From Entomortierella parvispora E1425 (lineage: Eukaryota; Fungi; Mortierellomycota), in assembly GCA_020891255.1 (NCBI GenBank), contig BQFW01000015.1, positions 2,046,001-2,110,000 on the forward strand: 64,000 nucleotides of DNA. Direction: 5' to 3'. The translations under genes and the position numbers were made by a program. Each line of letters begins with the position of its first letter. Position 1 is the stretch's first letter. Below the pieces are notes generated by a model, which saw only the letters and a program-made list of their open reading frames with translations, was not told where the DNA came from and did no database searches. Below, one piece after another: positions 40,629 to 48,105 of the stretch.

Positions 40629-43600
40629 ATGGAGAGCCATAAAGAACCCACTTCCCTCCCCTTCTCATCCTCGGCAGCGACCTCTTCTCAATCTCACCCG
40701 CCTGCTGCCCCATCCTCTACCTTCTCCTCCACACAGTCACCATCGCAATCACAACCACAACCACCACAATCGCAATCAGAACCAAGAACAGTCGTCTCCA
40801 CCTCCACTGCATCCACATCACCCCGATCAAATTTGGCGGCAACCTCCAACTCTGAATCCTCACGATCTGCAAAGTCCTTGCATACGGACCACACCATGAA
40901 GGAGGATCACCCTATGTATCAGGATGAGCTTGATCAAGAGGAGGATGCGGATCAACAAATGAACGGTGACGACGAAGGCGACAACGAACAAGAGGATGAG
41001 GATGATGAGGATGTGGATGACCTCTCCAGTCTGTCCTCTTCTCTGTCCATGGACGAGGATGAGCACAGCGATACGGAAACCAACAATAATAACAACAACA
41101 AAACCCGCGGAAAGCACCATCCAAATTCTTCAAGCCGCAGAGAGTCAGTCGGTGCACGCAAGCGGTCTGCGGCGCCAGAGTCTCATTCTGAATCAGATTC
41201 AGCATTAGATTCCGCACATGACTCTCAACTCGACTCTGAATCCGATTCTGATCTGGACACGGAATCAAAAGCACCATTGTCGCTGTCGCGGAGACAAAGT
41301 ACCCTTGCGGCCGCAACCGCTCTCTCGTCCTCGACTGATTCTCGGAGACAGAGTGTTGCAGGAATACGCCGCGAAAGCCAAGGAACTCGGGATCACCTTC
41401 AGCCTCATGGACAGGCGCGTGCACGGGAGCTTGATGAAAATGATGACCATGGCGAGGACATGGACGTGGATCAGGATCGCCCCCAAGGGCAGATTTCCTC
41501 CGGCGCCACCAAGAGATCGACAGTCCTCCGCGAGCCTGTTTCCGGAGACCCAACTGTGGTTTTTGAAGACTCGAACGCCACAGCGAGCGAGAGTGAAGGG
41601 TAAGGAGACTTTGCTGAAGGAACATGGGGGGGGGGGGAGTCAAAGTGCCTACAGAAGCAGGGGCTTGCGCGTGTTTGCGAGGGTGGGAGGAACAGGGAAA
41701 CGATGGATGGCTCCCTTTTTTTATCAGCGTTTGGCTCTTTCTTTCCCTTTGCTTCTTCCCATGCTGGGTCCTTTTTTTTTTTTTTGGAACATCCTTTCCG
41801 TCCCATGCATGCTGGATCCTCCTACCCAACCATTGCCGGCATTCCCTGGGAGCGGATGAGCTTCCTGTACTTGTACACTTGTGCGCTTGCTTGACCAGAC
41901 ATTAGTACCTCGGGGTATTTTTTTTGTGTGTGTGTGTGTATGCGTGTGTTTTTTTGTCTTTTGGCTTTGACAACCTGACCATGTCGCAGGAAATATTCGT
42001 CGGGTCAAAAATGCTCTGCACTCGATTCAATGCAGACTGACGCAGTCTCTTGGAAGGCCAAGCTGACGAGCGAAACTTTGTCGGCCATTTTCAGCCCCCA
42101 AACGGATCATTGTAACATCGGGCAATAAGAGTCACCACAGTCCTTTGCCTAGCCCAGGGGGGGCTGTCTTTCACCGCAGTCTCGAAACACACAATGTCTA
42201 ACCTTACCATTTCTCCTCGTTGGTTTAGAAGTCTTGCTCTTGAGGGCATCGACAGTGCTCGCCAATGGCCCTCCATGTCGGACAATCCGGAAAAGTCAAA
42301 AAAGTCTGGACTGGGAATCTCGCAAAAGTTGGCGTCAACAAAAGCAGCTGTCATCACCGGGTCAGGAGAGCGCCCTCATTCTTCAGGTCAAACTTCGACA
42401 CTCTACTATTCAACGCCTACAACGCGCTCCAGCCGCGTCAAGGATTCAATCACCAAGGAATCGACACCTCGTAAATGGGTCTGCCAGCCTGTACCCTTCG
42501 CGACTCTTGGAGGTGAAATGATGTTGCCGCTCTGGATTCCAAGTAAGTCATTGAAATGGATGGTCAGATTTTTTCTACTGGGTGAGGGGAAGTACTGGTG
42601 TTTTTTGTATCTTAGTGAGCTTAAGAAGGGAGGGTCGGATATCAAGAAATCTCCTCCCGCCAAGATTGAGTGAATGGACTGTTGGCTTCAACAAACCTTG
42701 CTAGAGGATCAGGCGCTGCTCCTTCCCGAGCAAGGTGTCATCGACCAGTCATGGGTGTGATGGATAAAGTGAAAGAAACACACAAAGGCAATGGGCTATG
42801 GAGGGACAGAGGAACAGGAAATGGGGAAATGAATTCTATGACTTCATTGGATGGCTGGCAACGACATTGTTGTGCTCTTATTGTTCTCTTGTCTCCCCTG
42901 GAAGAATAACAAGGGAAAGGGGCCGATGACCTTGTGCTCCCATGGCTTTGGGCATGGTCCTGCATCAACATCAACGGCTCGAGGCGCCTCGTTTGGATGA
43001 ACTGGATGGTGAAAACGAAATTATTTTTAAAATATTTTTTTTGGCGGGAAAATAATGTTTTTCGTCAGTGGGTGCATTGGCGGAAGAAAGGGAAGGGGAA
43101 ATCAGAGAGCACAACGTGTGCGGGAAGTGCGATTGAATGAGATTCTACTGTATCGACTGGATGGCTGACAGAGAGAGACTACAAAAACAACACAAAACAG
43201 ATCACAATATTAATCTCCCCTTTTTTTGTTTTTTTTTTTTTTCCTCCCGCACTTTCCATATTCCTCCTTACCCTCCCTCGCCCCCAACGAATAGAGGGAG
43301 ATATGCTGTTGAATGAACCAGTGGCACCCCTAGAGCTGGAGGCAGAAGGAATTGACGTGGATCTGGTTGCACCTGCGCACCATCATCACCATCATCATCA
43401 CCATCACCACCACCAACACCTCATGTCGACCGACCCAGAACTCACAAACACATCACGTCAAAAGCGAAAGATGAAGCTCAAGGATCTTGCCCTGAGAGAA
43501 TCCAGGGACCCTCAGGACCTGGAACTGTATGAGCAGGCTGAGCCTAAGCGTCGCCATATTAGTGACCGTCCCAAGGACATCAAGGGCAAGGGCACCCTCA

Positions 43601-44949
43601 AGGAGCGAAACCCCCTCGACATGAGACTCAAAGCCAACAGGGAGGAACGTTTGCGCCTCAAGAAAGAAAAGAAGCTCATCCAGGCCTCAAGAGAGCGGTC
43701 CGAGTCGAACGTGTCAACCCGCGATTCTACTCCAACGACACCCGTCGAAGGGGGGCCCGAGGAAGGATCCCCTTCGCGAGCAGACCACCGCTTTATGGAC
43801 AGCACTCTGTCTTCACCTTCTGGCGCAAATCGTCCACGACCCTTTATTTGTGATATTGAGGACTGCGGGAAGAGATTTGTCGACGCCATCCAATTGGAGA
43901 GGCACAAGGAACGCCATGGACCAAAAGAACTCGAATGTGACTTGGACATGTGCCGTAAGCTGTTCTCGTCCATCATGCTGCTGCGTCGTCATCAGTCCAT
44001 GGTCCATAAGAGGCGTTCCGAAAAATGGGAAAGTCCACCTGGCACTACTCGCCAACGATCTGGACGGTCCAGGAGAAAGGAACCCAGGATTGTTGCTTCC
44101 GGCGATGTCATGTACAACTTTGACTCTGAGCCAGACCAGAAACGTGCTTCAATGGAGGTTGACGAACTAGCGGACGATCACGAGCAACGAGAACGGACCT
44201 TGGACGATGACGGTAACGACGATGGTCAATATTCGGGCGACCCAAGAGCCTCAAAGACACCAAGAGATCTCAAGTTACCCAGGCCCCCCAAGGAGCAAAA
44301 ACCACTTAAGGAGGCTAAACTGCCCAAGATCAAGGCGCCAAGAGAGCCGAAGCTTGCAAAGCCAACCAAGGCCTATATCCCCAAGAGACTGGCTCCACGA
44401 GGTGACGACGAAATGTCCTTGGAGAACTCGATGGAGGGAGAAGCTGGTCCCAGCGGGTCTTCTGGCGTTGACAGTGACCATGTCATGCGAGGACCTCTCC
44501 TTACCACCAGTTCTGGGGCAGTTGGAAGTGCTGAAGGTGTTCAGACCACTTTATCTGCTCCAGTTGTCAAACCAAGACCTTTCCACTGTACCTATGACGA
44601 CTGCAAAAAGGTGTTTATCGATGCAATTCAGCTGGAGCGACATCTGGAACGCCATGGACCAAAGGAACTGGAGTGCGGCATTGACGGATGCCGTAAGCGA
44701 TTCTCAGCCATCATGTTGCTTCGACGCCACCAATCTATGGTCCACAAGCGCAGAAGCCCCGCCATTGCTGTCTCGGCCACCACTGGAGCCCGCGCCAAAA
44801 CGACCGCCTCAAGCCCATTGGCCACGCGTCCTGCCAATTCTAGTGTTGAGCCCCAGCCCACCGCTCCACCATCCGAACCTCATTCAGCTCCTGATGCCAA
44901 CAGCGAGCCCCACCCTGCCCCTCCCAATGGCTACACTGACCGTGTCTAA
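40629..44949 (+). CDS. YY1/Pho/Iec1-like C2H2 zinc-finger protein; exons 40629-41599, 42229-42542, 43295-44949
   Basis: Splice phases join all three exons. Acidic N-terminus, REPO-like RKWVCQPVPFATLGGEMMLPLW, His12 tract, two pairs of C2H2 fingers with the HGPK linker (YY1 has HGPR). Confidence 0.75.
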
Positions 44950-45348
44950 AACTCTTTCTCTATCTTTGCTTTTACCTCTTTTCTTTCTATTTTCCTAGTT
45001 TTTCCTTCTGTACACTTCCAGTTCACTTTTTTTTCTTTTGTTCATCCTTTTGCTGACTTTTGCGCTTACTTCTGTACCATTCACTCCCATGCTCCCCTTC
45101 TTTCTTTTTCTTCTCTGCTTGCCCTTCTTTGCTTGCTTGCTTTCATCAATTTCTGTACCATTTCAACTTCTTTTTTTTTTTCTTGTTATGACTTTCATCC
45201 CCTAATCCTTCACGGCGCTTGTATTCGTCCGTTCAACCAATGCTTTCAAAACAAATGACAAATAAAAGCATCTCAAGATTCTCGCGAATTTTATTCCTTG
45301 CACAAGTCTGGTGTTAGAGCTATAGTACCTCTATGTAAGAACTTTCCT

Positions 45349-46829
45349 CTAATGCTTTCTCTCGGTGCCTCGTTGAACAAATGCGGACGCGTACGAGACG
45401 CTGGAGTCCGAGGTGGTCAAGACTTCGCTTGACTGGGAGTAATGCACAAATTGGATACGATGGTGCCCAGTGCGACCATTCTCGCCCTGCCGACCCTTGG
45501 ACGCGTCCAATTCTTGGAGGGCAGCCATGAGAACGCCAATAGGGTGACGGCCACAGATGGTATTCTTGGTCTGGGACAAATATCTGCAGTATGCCCCATG
45601 GTCTCCTTGTTCAATCTTCTCCATGCCCTCGTGGTCCAGATCTCGAATGGATTCGAAAATCTTGCGCCCTTGTGCAGAAGGAGGTTGATAGTTCTTTTTG
45701 CCGCCAGAGCGCGCAAGACTTTGCGTCACCGTTCCTTGCTCATCCCTGTAATATGTGTAATCGAATCGAGTTCCCCTACATAAGAGTGACAACTTGTTGG
45801 ATTAATTTTGGGTAATCCACAACACTCTCCCCTCGTCCCACGCCCTCTTTTTTTTTTTTTTTTTTTTTTACCAATGACAGAAATCACTCGAGATGACAAA
45901 GAGGTTCTCGGAATCATTCAGATACGGCGCCAAAAGCTTTCCATAGGACCGTTCCGTGGTTTCGTTCAATGCCCCGACTAAGATAGGGACAATTTCGATG
46001 GGGTTCTTCTCAAAGACCTTGTAGATATAAGGCAGATGCATTTCCAAGCTGTGTTCGTCTTCATCTGTTTCCTGGGACATTTGGTCAAACTTTCCCGTCT
46101 GTGCCAACTCCTCGGTCGCTAGGGGATACCACACGTGTTAGTGCCTTACACCCGAAGGAGACAAAAGTGACCTCCCACAGAGAGATGACCGCCTTTTTTG
46201 TACAAAAGACTTACTAATCTGATCCACAATGAGATCTCCCAGAGGAGTTTCGTAACGCTCGCACTTTGAAAGAGCACATCCTGCCAAGTAGATATGATGG
46301 GATGGTCCGAGGATGAACACGCGTTTGCTGGATAAGATGGCATCATCATTACAAAGAGAGAGGAGGGGGACATAGGTTAGTCTTATCCTATGATAGTTGG
46401 ATCGATACCACACAAATGCCACTGCACATTACAAGAGGTCAGGGTTGATGCATTTGTAAGCGAATCCCGCTGCTGGTCCACTGTACGAGTATCCAGCATG
46501 CCTACATGTCACCGAAAGAAAAGACAAAAAAAAAAGGATTCAGCGACACATCTCCAACAGAAACGGGACTATAGCTGAAAAGAAGACAGAGATCGAGACT
46601 CACGGTGCAATGATGGCGCGTAAACCGTCGATAGGGAGCGCGTCTCCTTGGGCAGTCTCTGACCCGACCTTGGTCAACCATCCGGTCAACTGGCGGTCCA
46701 GCTCCTTTTCTAGAGAAGCAAAAAAGGATTAGCAGCGGGAGAAGGACTACTTTGTGTGGGCAAAAGCAAGCAGGTCTTACTGTTGGACGAGTACCAAGAC
46801 CCAGCATGGGAAGCATCTCGCGCACTCAT
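45349..46829 (-). CDS. MEMO1: MEMO1 / Mho1 family protein, 6 exons
   Basis: [79 protein letters not shown]. Confidence 0.96.
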
Positions 46830-47098
46830 TTGGGTAAAACTTTCTTGGAATGAAGGGAGGAAGAGAGGAAGGTGAATGAGGAGAACACAGAGGAAAGAGA
46901 GCGTCCCTGACCCTTTTCTTGTCCTTTTCTGGGCGCATGACCCGCAACCAGGCCACTGTGGGCACGTGCAGTACGCCACCAAAGTACGACTGTAGAAAGG
47001 GGTCATGCATTCAATCACCATGCTTGCCGCATGCTCTCTTTCCTCCTCGCCCTTGAACATCGGTTCGCACATTTCACTCCCTGTCCCAGTCTGGATGC

Positions 47099-48105
47099 AT
47101 GAATCACTCCAGGACCCATCAGGATGAGGCGGCTGAGGAAGAGCTCTCTATTGTCCATCGCATCCTCGGTCAGGCTTCGTTTGTGCTCGAGAGTCCCACG
47201 CTCTTTGACCAGCTTTGGACCCCTGCCTATCTTGCACGGTCTTTTCAATGGACAGAACATCTACAATCGATCATCAAGGGCAATACGCGAGACGATGCCT
47301 TAAGAGATGACTTGGATGTGGACGATGATCAAGAGGTCGACCCTAAAACCACGATAGCTCGATTCTTGGAGAGATCAAAGGCAAAAGGCCCGTCCACAAT
47401 CAAGGTCCAAGGCAAGGACAAGGAACTGGTCCCTGTCACCTTGGAAGAAATGGCGGATCCTACAAACACCCTCTGCAGTCGACTACTCCACAATCCAGTC
47501 ATTTCGGACCGTGTGAGAAAAGAAGTTGTCGACTTTATGGTGACGAATGAATCCAGGGGTATCCAAACACCCGTCCATACAAGGGCCACGGCACAGCTCT
47601 TGGCCAGCATACAATCCCATATGAAGCAAGTCCCTCCACCGTTGCAGATTGTTGCTACTATTGATGAAGGTATGTACGGACTCTAGTAAACGCCCTCCCC
47701 TCCTTTTTTGGTCCAAAAACAATAACGGCAACGCCTCACTCTCTATGCACAGAGGAATTACATCATCGAGCACAAGCGCAAGCTATTTTAGAAAGAGTTC
47801 GTAATGCTGGGTCAGCGATCGACCAGGAGACCACACTTCGACGCTTGGATGAGTACCTGATCCAAGCACGATCAGAAGCCATGGTAAACCAACTTTTGAC
47901 TCTACACGGATTCTGGTTCTTTCCTGAAGATACCATGTTCTGATCTTGACCTTTTTTGTTTTTTCCAACATAGGCCGTTATCCGTCAACTGATGCTCATC
48001 ACTGAAGAGGACAAGGAAGAAGACAAGGCAACAGTAGACGTCTACCTGGAGGCGTTTCGAGCAGCCTTGTCTGCTCGATTGCAGGGCTACAGCAAATCAA
48101 AATAA
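47099..48105 (+). CDS. FANCF-like protein (277 aa), exons 47099-47669, 47753-47883, 47974-48105
   Basis: Canonical GT-AG introns give one continuous frame. Three colinear blocks resemble human FANCF as recalled: WTPAYLARSFQWTEHLQSI, LCSRLLHNPVISDRVR and RAQAQAILERVRNAG. Confidence 0.68.

Follow-up and report, generated by a model that had tools for sequence, protein, structure and literature searches.

A REPO-type two-tryptophan hairpin related to those of YY1 and Pho, encoded with C2H2 zinc fingers in a predicted protein of Entomortierella parvispora

Introduction

In the INO80 remodeller a two-tryptophan (2W) hairpin bridges actin and Arp4. The tryptophan pair of both Ies4 and YY1 forms an aromatic corner around actin Pro367, and the tip of the hairpin touches Arp8 and the HSA region of Ino80, contacts believed to determine membership of INO80 (Kunert et al. 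2022, PMC9733932). A DNA-binding domain is present in YY1 and Pho but not in fungal Ies4, and the equivalence of YY1 and Ies4 was proposed from structure alone, without recognisable sequence similarity (PMC9733932). Here we describe a gene in a window of 64,000 nucleotides (nt) from Entomortierella parvispora E1425 (assembly GCA_020891255.1, contig BQFW01000015.1, positions 2,046,001 to 2,110,000 of the forward strand; all positions below are those of the window), which is predicted to join a hairpin of the YY1/Pho type, known as REPO, to C2H2 zinc fingers.

Related arrangements have been reported in other lineages and other complexes. The plant YY1 protein combines a REPO hairpin with fingers and associates with INO80 (PMC10146089), and Iec1 of S. 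pombe and IEC-1 of Neurospora are C2H2 proteins that were described as YY1 homologues and recruit INO80 (PMC5406019, PMC8373062). Hairpins of the 2W kind also anchor SWI/SNF, SWR1 and NuA4, through Rtt102, BCL7/BDH and Swc4/DMAP1 (PMC9733932, PMC11761322), and fungal INO80 and SWI/SNF are able to use one actin-Arp4 pair (PMC11761322). The Pho hairpin binds the 4MBT domain of Sfmbt, and the contact residues have been listed (PMC3828522). Our literature search found no paper on a REPO-bearing factor, or on YY1/REPO, in Mortierella, Mucoromycota or fungi generally.

Results

The peptide lies at the end of the second exon of the gene, where positions 42470-42535 of the forward strand encode the 22-residue sequence RKWVCQPVPFATLGGEMMLPLW; the translation of 42230-42541 on the same strand ends in TPRKWVCQPVPFATLGGEMMLPLWIP. 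Written with its two following residues as RKWVCQPVPFATLGGEMMLPLW(IP), the hairpin spans 42470-42541 (+), with the Trp codons at 42476-42478 and 42533-42535 and the turn at LGG. An initial annotation of the window had aligned this peptide with a YY1 REPO sequence; that sequence agrees with the MBTD1-bound YY1 peptide in the PDB (chain 4c5i_C), and the ungapped alignment was reproduced with 8 of 22 residues identical and both Trp in register (W-x18-W). The six frames of the 64 kb contain 69,624 stop-free segments of 22 residues, among which this peptide was the best match to the YY1 22-mer (BLOSUM62 score 45), followed by a segment scoring 33 in a low-complexity Lys/Glu-rich stretch. Shuffling the peptide 1,000,000 times gave no score of 45 or above (maximum 38), and the resemblance to YY1 exceeds chance.

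Single-sequence searches of the PDB with phmmer, using exon 2 or a 28-residue peptide, returned nothing relevant, and a family profile was needed. Pfam matched no family in exons 1-2, in the hairpin region of the orthologues or in the hairpin proteins of Glomeromycota described below. Two profiles made solely from fungal sequences were run against 177,635 distinct PDB sequences: A1, built from 14 Mortierellomycota hairpin segments, and A3, a broader profile that adds the Glomeromycota proteins. The top four matches of A1 were the YY1 REPO chain 4c5i_C (expectation value E 1.9e-5, 27 bits) and three Pho spacer chains (E 0.008-0.013), the fifth match being already at E 0.84, and A3 gave just four matches at E<=10, again YY1 (1.4e-6) and Pho (4e-4 to 8e-4). 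Neither profile matched an Ies4, Rtt102, Swc4, BCL7 or DMAP1 chain in the PDB. Because profiles derived from fungi picked out YY1 and Pho alone, the peptide is, as judged from sequence, a genuine and conserved relative of the YY1/Pho REPO (2W) hairpin.

The 44-residue segment of A1 was modelled with AlphaFold2, which placed strands at residues 24-32 and 35-43 and the turn at LGG, with predicted local distance difference test (pLDDT) values of 90-96, strand 1 opening and strand 2 closing with a Trp. The hairpin is thereby modelled as two antiparallel strands flanked by the two Trp, with a KTLGGE-type tip. When the model was compared with 350,542 chains in Foldseek, ranks 1-5 and 7 were occupied by Ies4 of the C. 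thermophilum INO80 A-module (8a5d, 8a5q and 8a5p, the top three ranks) and by Pho in PhoRC (4c5e, 4c5g and 4c5h), although these matches were not significant (E about 1) and their rank is suggestive at most. The superposition on Pho gave a root-mean-square deviation of 1.4 A over 22-24 residues.

All close homologues of the protein came from Mortierellaceae (19 orthologue models, 44-60% identity), and word-based protein searches, with the hairpin region and with the finger pair, returned Mortierellomycota matches only. None of the family members has a more specific annotation than hypothetical or C2H2 protein. PRKWIC[KR]QVPVKTLGGEMMMPIWFSEEDMLLNE is found in the models that reach the N-terminus, in orthologues from eight or more taxa, and the family consensus is nearer to YY1 than the window copy is, with 11 of 22 identities and a BLOSUM62 score of 62. 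Across three fungal families R, K, W, T and W do not vary, and the tip residues GGE hardly do. The E. parvispora lineage, represented by the window and the metagenome proteins P0055 and P0058, has its own substitutions where the rest of the family does not vary: in strand 1 K to Q, Q to P or A, V to F and K to A, and past strand 2 FSEE to IPKG. It retains both Trp and the TLGGE tip.

The hairpin exon is absent from 10 of the 19 orthologue models (P0003, P0005, P0006, P0008, P0009, P0011-P0014 and P0016). It was found in the genomic sequence of Lobosporangium (locus L001, 5300-5359) and Gamsiella (locus L002, 4966-5025), about 650-1000 nt upstream of the zinc-finger gene model; in the former it is part of a separately called upstream gene and in the latter it lies outside the zinc-finger gene model. 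An intron of about 660-960 nt seems to defeat the gene callers, and the missing exon points to a systematic annotation error that hides the architecture from domain surveys. Conservation in related fungi was thus borne out by at least eight annotated orthologues, by the exon left out of the zinc-finger model in these two loci and by the paralogue family described below.

The hairpin-coding gene was modelled with three exons on the forward strand, of compatible phases, giving a spliced product of 979 amino acids with a single terminal stop; this model rests on comparison between relatives. Exon 1 (40629-41599) was taken from the open reading frame listing and ends in the donor GG/GTAAGG; its product is rich in Ser, Asp and Glu and probably disordered, and the position of its start codon is uncertain. 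Intron 1 (41600-42228, 629 nt) is in phase 2, and the peptide across this junction, SESEG/SLALEGIDS (SESEG/SLALEGIDSARQWPSM), is kept in four orthologues (P0007, P0015, P0017 and P0019). Exon 2 (42229-42542) follows a TTTAG acceptor and encodes in order the motif SLALEGIDSARQWPSMSD, a linker and the hairpin, with the donor A/GTAAGT at 42542/42543. Intron 2 (42543-43294, 752 nt) is in phase 1 and starts 7 nt past the second Trp codon, and exon 3 (43295-44949, through the stop codon) begins at the acceptor AATAG/AG at 43294/43295 and carries all the fingers.

The phase-1 join of exons 2 and 3 reads LWIP-K-GDMLLNE, as the initial annotation had proposed, and leads directly into a DMLLNEP motif (43300-43320, +). 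The layout of this junction is common to the window, Lobosporangium (L001), Gamsiella (L002) and a metagenome relative (L007): in all four loci the donor GT stands 7 nt past the second Trp codon in phase 1, the introns measure about 660-960 nt, and the YAG acceptor is 8 nt ahead of the ATG of (D)MLLNEP. At least eight independent gene models join the hairpin exon to exon 3. A splice junction kept in several genera places, in prediction, the hairpin and the C2H2 fingers in one protein. The Logan contigs L005 and L006 contain intron sequence upstream, i.e., they are not spliced transcripts.

The fingers are arranged as two pairs. Pair 1 (43849-44007, +; residues 614-666) has the form CX4C-X12-HX3H, an HGP linker and CX4C-X12-HX4H, and belongs to Pfam zf-C2H2; pair 2 (44587-44745, +; residues 860-912) is an internal duplicate of it, 74% identical over pair segments of 66 residues and separated from it by about 190 residues. 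Each pair is nearly invariant across Mortierellaceae. The best solved match of the fingers was YY1 (1ubd), at E 1.6e-12 with the single sequence and 8e-20 with a profile; a pair can be aligned with YY1 fingers 1-2, HGP linker included, and with fingers 3-4 just as well. The protein-atlas neighbours of the fingers were generic C2H2 clusters only.

An exhaustive profile search with the hairpin retrieved 49 proteins at E<=1e-3, in a library in which YY1 itself would score near E 0.2 and is not listed, so that the result is silent on other phyla. Three groups were recognised: the four-finger family of the window, a family of Zn2Cys6 paralogues, and small Glomeromycota proteins. The paralogues (P0022-P0059, Mortierellomycota) have an N-terminal Zn2Cys6 cluster, the hairpin and one C2H2 pair, with the hairpin, ARKWGR...TLGGE...PLW.SDQ[DE]MLLNE, between the two zinc domains. 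In truncated models of these proteins the reading frame runs on into an intron immediately past W-x-S, and the intron position after the second Trp appears to be common to both Mortierellomycota families. The two families share the hairpin type, the position and apparent phase of this intron, and the type of finger pair; the paralogues stand apart by the extra zinc cluster, by having one finger pair, and by HVT in place of HGP as linker.

The Glomeromycota proteins came from Geosiphon, Ambispora, Diversispora and Funneliformis, and their best PDB match was again YY1. The small ones (P0065, P0067, P0072 and P0075) have 213-254 amino acids; P0065 (Geosiphon, L003:6001-6981) and P0067 (Ambispora) show an AT-hook-like N-terminus, RGRPRKP, a C-terminal hairpin, KPRKWNRKKVVIRTTGGEIAMPVWYS, and no fingers. 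These small proteins are probably Ies4 equivalents. The Diversispora and Funneliformis models are fused to a NEPRO_N domain, which in Geosiphon is encoded by a separate neighbouring gene.

Other features of the gene and its surroundings were also recorded. The motif SLALEGIDSARQWPSMSD (42230-42283), at the start of exon 2, is a second conserved short motif, present in all orthologues that include this exon. Exon 1 contains an acidic tract (40923-41021, +), and exon 3 contains a His tract (43378-43419, +; 12 His and then QH) and a basic stretch, RQKRKMKLKDLALRESRDPQDL (43456-43521, +). The length of the His tract varies among orthologues and, being low-complexity, it was not used as evidence. 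Both introns look long for a fungal gene; runs of T and of G occur in intron 1 together with a (GT)n microsatellite near 41926-41949, a long T-run lies near 43225-43245 in intron 2, and an Rfam scan of the two (629 and 752 nt) gave nothing of note. Downstream (about 45000-48105), the order of a Memo-family gene on the minus strand, a FANCF-like gene and a gene for a leucine-rich repeat protein is conserved with L001, L002 and L007.

Discussion

In its predicted make-up the protein follows YY1, being a putative 2W/REPO client that also has a DNA-binding domain, and its new elements are the duplicated 2+2 fingers and the fungal paralogue with a zinc cluster. It shares with YY1 and Pho of animals and AtYY1 of plants a REPO/2W hairpin that is N-terminal to C2H2 fingers, and with YY1 also the HGP linker of fingers 1-2 and the presence of acidic and His tracts. 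In contrast, the fungal protein is more than twice as long as YY1 (979 amino acids), its hairpin is followed by DMLLNEP, and its His tract comes after the hairpin rather than before it. Ies4, an INO80 A-module subunit of yeasts and filamentous ascomycetes and the expected fungal occupant of the actin-Arp4 site, also has a 2W hairpin, but is small and without a DNA-binding domain (PMC9733932), whereas the window protein has 979 amino acids and four C2H2 fingers; the Glomeromycota proteins P0065 and P0067 are nearer to Ies4 in size. Membership of the window protein in Ies4 was considered and rejected, given its fingers and the lack of a sequence match to Ies4 chains or in Pfam. Iec1 and IEC-1, compared here through their published descriptions, are known for their fingers, and in those fungi it is Ies4 that supplies the hairpin.

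On balance we think it probable that the gene encodes a sequence-specific DNA-binding protein whose REPO hairpin docks on the actin-Arp4 pair of INO80 and targets the remodeller. The product would be nuclear, with a long disordered N-terminal region ending in the hairpin, followed by two duplicated finger modules. The fingers would bind specific DNA sites while the hairpin would put its Trp corner onto the actin-Arp4 pair held by the HSA helix, and the protein would act as a sequence-specific targeting subunit. All three elements, the docking on actin-Arp4, the choice of INO80 and the binding of DNA through the fingers, are proposed by analogy. The most likely partner would be the INO80 A-module, because the hairpin sequence resembles those of the INO80 clients YY1 and Pho and not those of BCL7, Rtt102 or Swc4; it is in the tip, KT[LM]xGE, that the likeness to YY1 is greatest. 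The background on which the initial annotation drew, docking of YY1 on the INO80 A-module and binding of Pho to Sfmbt, holds in the published work (PMC9733932, PMC3828522), and its profile check was answered by the matches of the fungal profiles to YY1 REPO (E 1.9e-5 and 1.4e-6) and Pho.

Several observations weigh against this reading. Strand 1 of the E. parvispora copy is atypical for the family (K to Q, Q to P, V to F, K to A), and the structural comparisons lend little: besides the Foldseek result, VIA-align of the 44-residue hairpin model gave nothing at Z>=2, which is expected for such a short model and uninformative. The preference of the fingers for YY1 is narrow (74 bits with the profile, vs 67 for TFIIIA and 63 for ZNF568 and ZNF410), their recognition helices differ from those of YY1, and the four contiguous C-terminal fingers of YY1 are replaced by two separated pairs. 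The fingers are compatible with a YY1 origin, without being proof of it, and with separated pairs and a small margin over TFIIIA orthology to YY1 is no more than possible; since the recognition helices differ, the DNA motif of YY1 is not expected. The ATG 8 nt past the acceptor is conserved, 10 of the 19 public models begin at or after it, and a finger-only product starting there is conceivable. Finally, 2W hairpins also serve SWI/SNF, SWR1 and NuA4, and sequence alone does not fix the complex.

This last point underlies the alternative that survives best, in which the hairpin docks on the actin/Arp module of SWI/SNF or RSC, SWR1 or NuA4 rather than on that of INO80. Such hairpins are shared anchors of these complexes (PMC9733932, PMC11761322), and in fungi INO80 and SWI/SNF are able to share the actin-Arp4 pair (PMC11761322). 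We nevertheless consider it unlikely, as the profiles matched only the INO80 clients YY1 and Pho and left the Rtt102, Swc4, BCL7 and DMAP1 chains unmatched, and the part of the hairpin best conserved with YY1 is the tip, which is reported to confer INO80 specificity through its contacts with Arp8 and HSA (PMC9733932).

A second alternative is that two genes are present, with exons 1-2 encoding a stand-alone Ies4-like hairpin protein and the finger protein starting at the ATG of DMLLNE. This ATG is conserved 8 nt past the acceptor in every locus examined, the start of 10 of the 19 public models at or after it and the separate upstream gene in the Lobosporangium annotation fit such a split, and finger-less hairpin proteins do exist in Glomeromycota. 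The junction itself argues otherwise. The donor lies exactly 7 nt past the second Trp, always in phase 1, in the window and in L001, L002 and L007, and is paired with a pyrimidine tract or branch-point-like sequence and a YAG acceptor despite introns of about 660-960 nt. The sequence past the donor is not conserved. The exons are joined in the at least eight independent gene models mentioned above, and the paralogue family has the same junction with its hairpin enclosed between Zn2Cys6 and C2H2 domains. We regard two separate genes as quite improbable.

A Polycomb-type function, raised by the initial annotation, would have the hairpin tether an MBT-domain repressor of the PhoRC kind. The hairpins of Pho and YY1 do bind the 4MBT domains of Sfmbt and MBTD1, and when the published contacts (PMC3828522) were mapped on the alignment the hydrophobic ones (V153, I155, M158, F162, V164, M166 and W167) were conservatively kept, but binding to actin-Arp4 would need the same hydrophobic face anyway. 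All four polar Pho-Sfmbt contacts are changed in the window copy (K151 to Q, K156 to A, E159 to G and S169 to P), and no MBT protein of E. parvispora was seen, none having been searched for; the Polycomb-type link found no support and we regard it as very unlikely. Convergence or chance, with an unrelated role for the hairpin, is suggested by the shortness of the motif (about 25 residues) and the non-significant Foldseek and VIA-align searches, but is barely credible against profile E values of 1e-5 to 1e-6 that single out YY1 and Pho, positions conserved in both that are invariant across three fungal families, and a location N-terminal to C2H2 fingers, as in YY1.

Beyond the favoured function as an INO80 targeting subunit, a tentative evolutionary scenario, possible although we would not rely on it, is that in ancestral fungi the actin-Arp4 site of INO80 was occupied by a YY1-type factor with hairpin and zinc fingers, kept by Mortierellomycota in two paralogous forms and reduced to a finger-less Ies4 and a separate Iec1 in Glomeromycota and, later, in Dikarya. 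If this were true, the four-finger protein and the Zn2Cys6 paralogue would be rivals for one docking site and would give rise to different INO80 assemblies targeted by DNA sequence, and the equivalence of YY1 and Ies4 would gain, from Mortierellomycota and Glomeromycota, the link at sequence level that it has lacked.

Fungal 2W clients had been described as proteins without a DNA-binding domain (PMC9733932), and here a recognisable REPO hairpin is found on a predicted fungal zinc-finger protein, with the sister phylum Glomeromycota bearing the same hairpin on small finger-less proteins. The evolution of an INO80 targeting subunit, by fusion or fission of hairpin and fingers, would thus become testable in transformable fungi, for example Mortierella alpina, as would the question of whether DNA-binding 2W clients already recruited remodellers before animals and plants arose.

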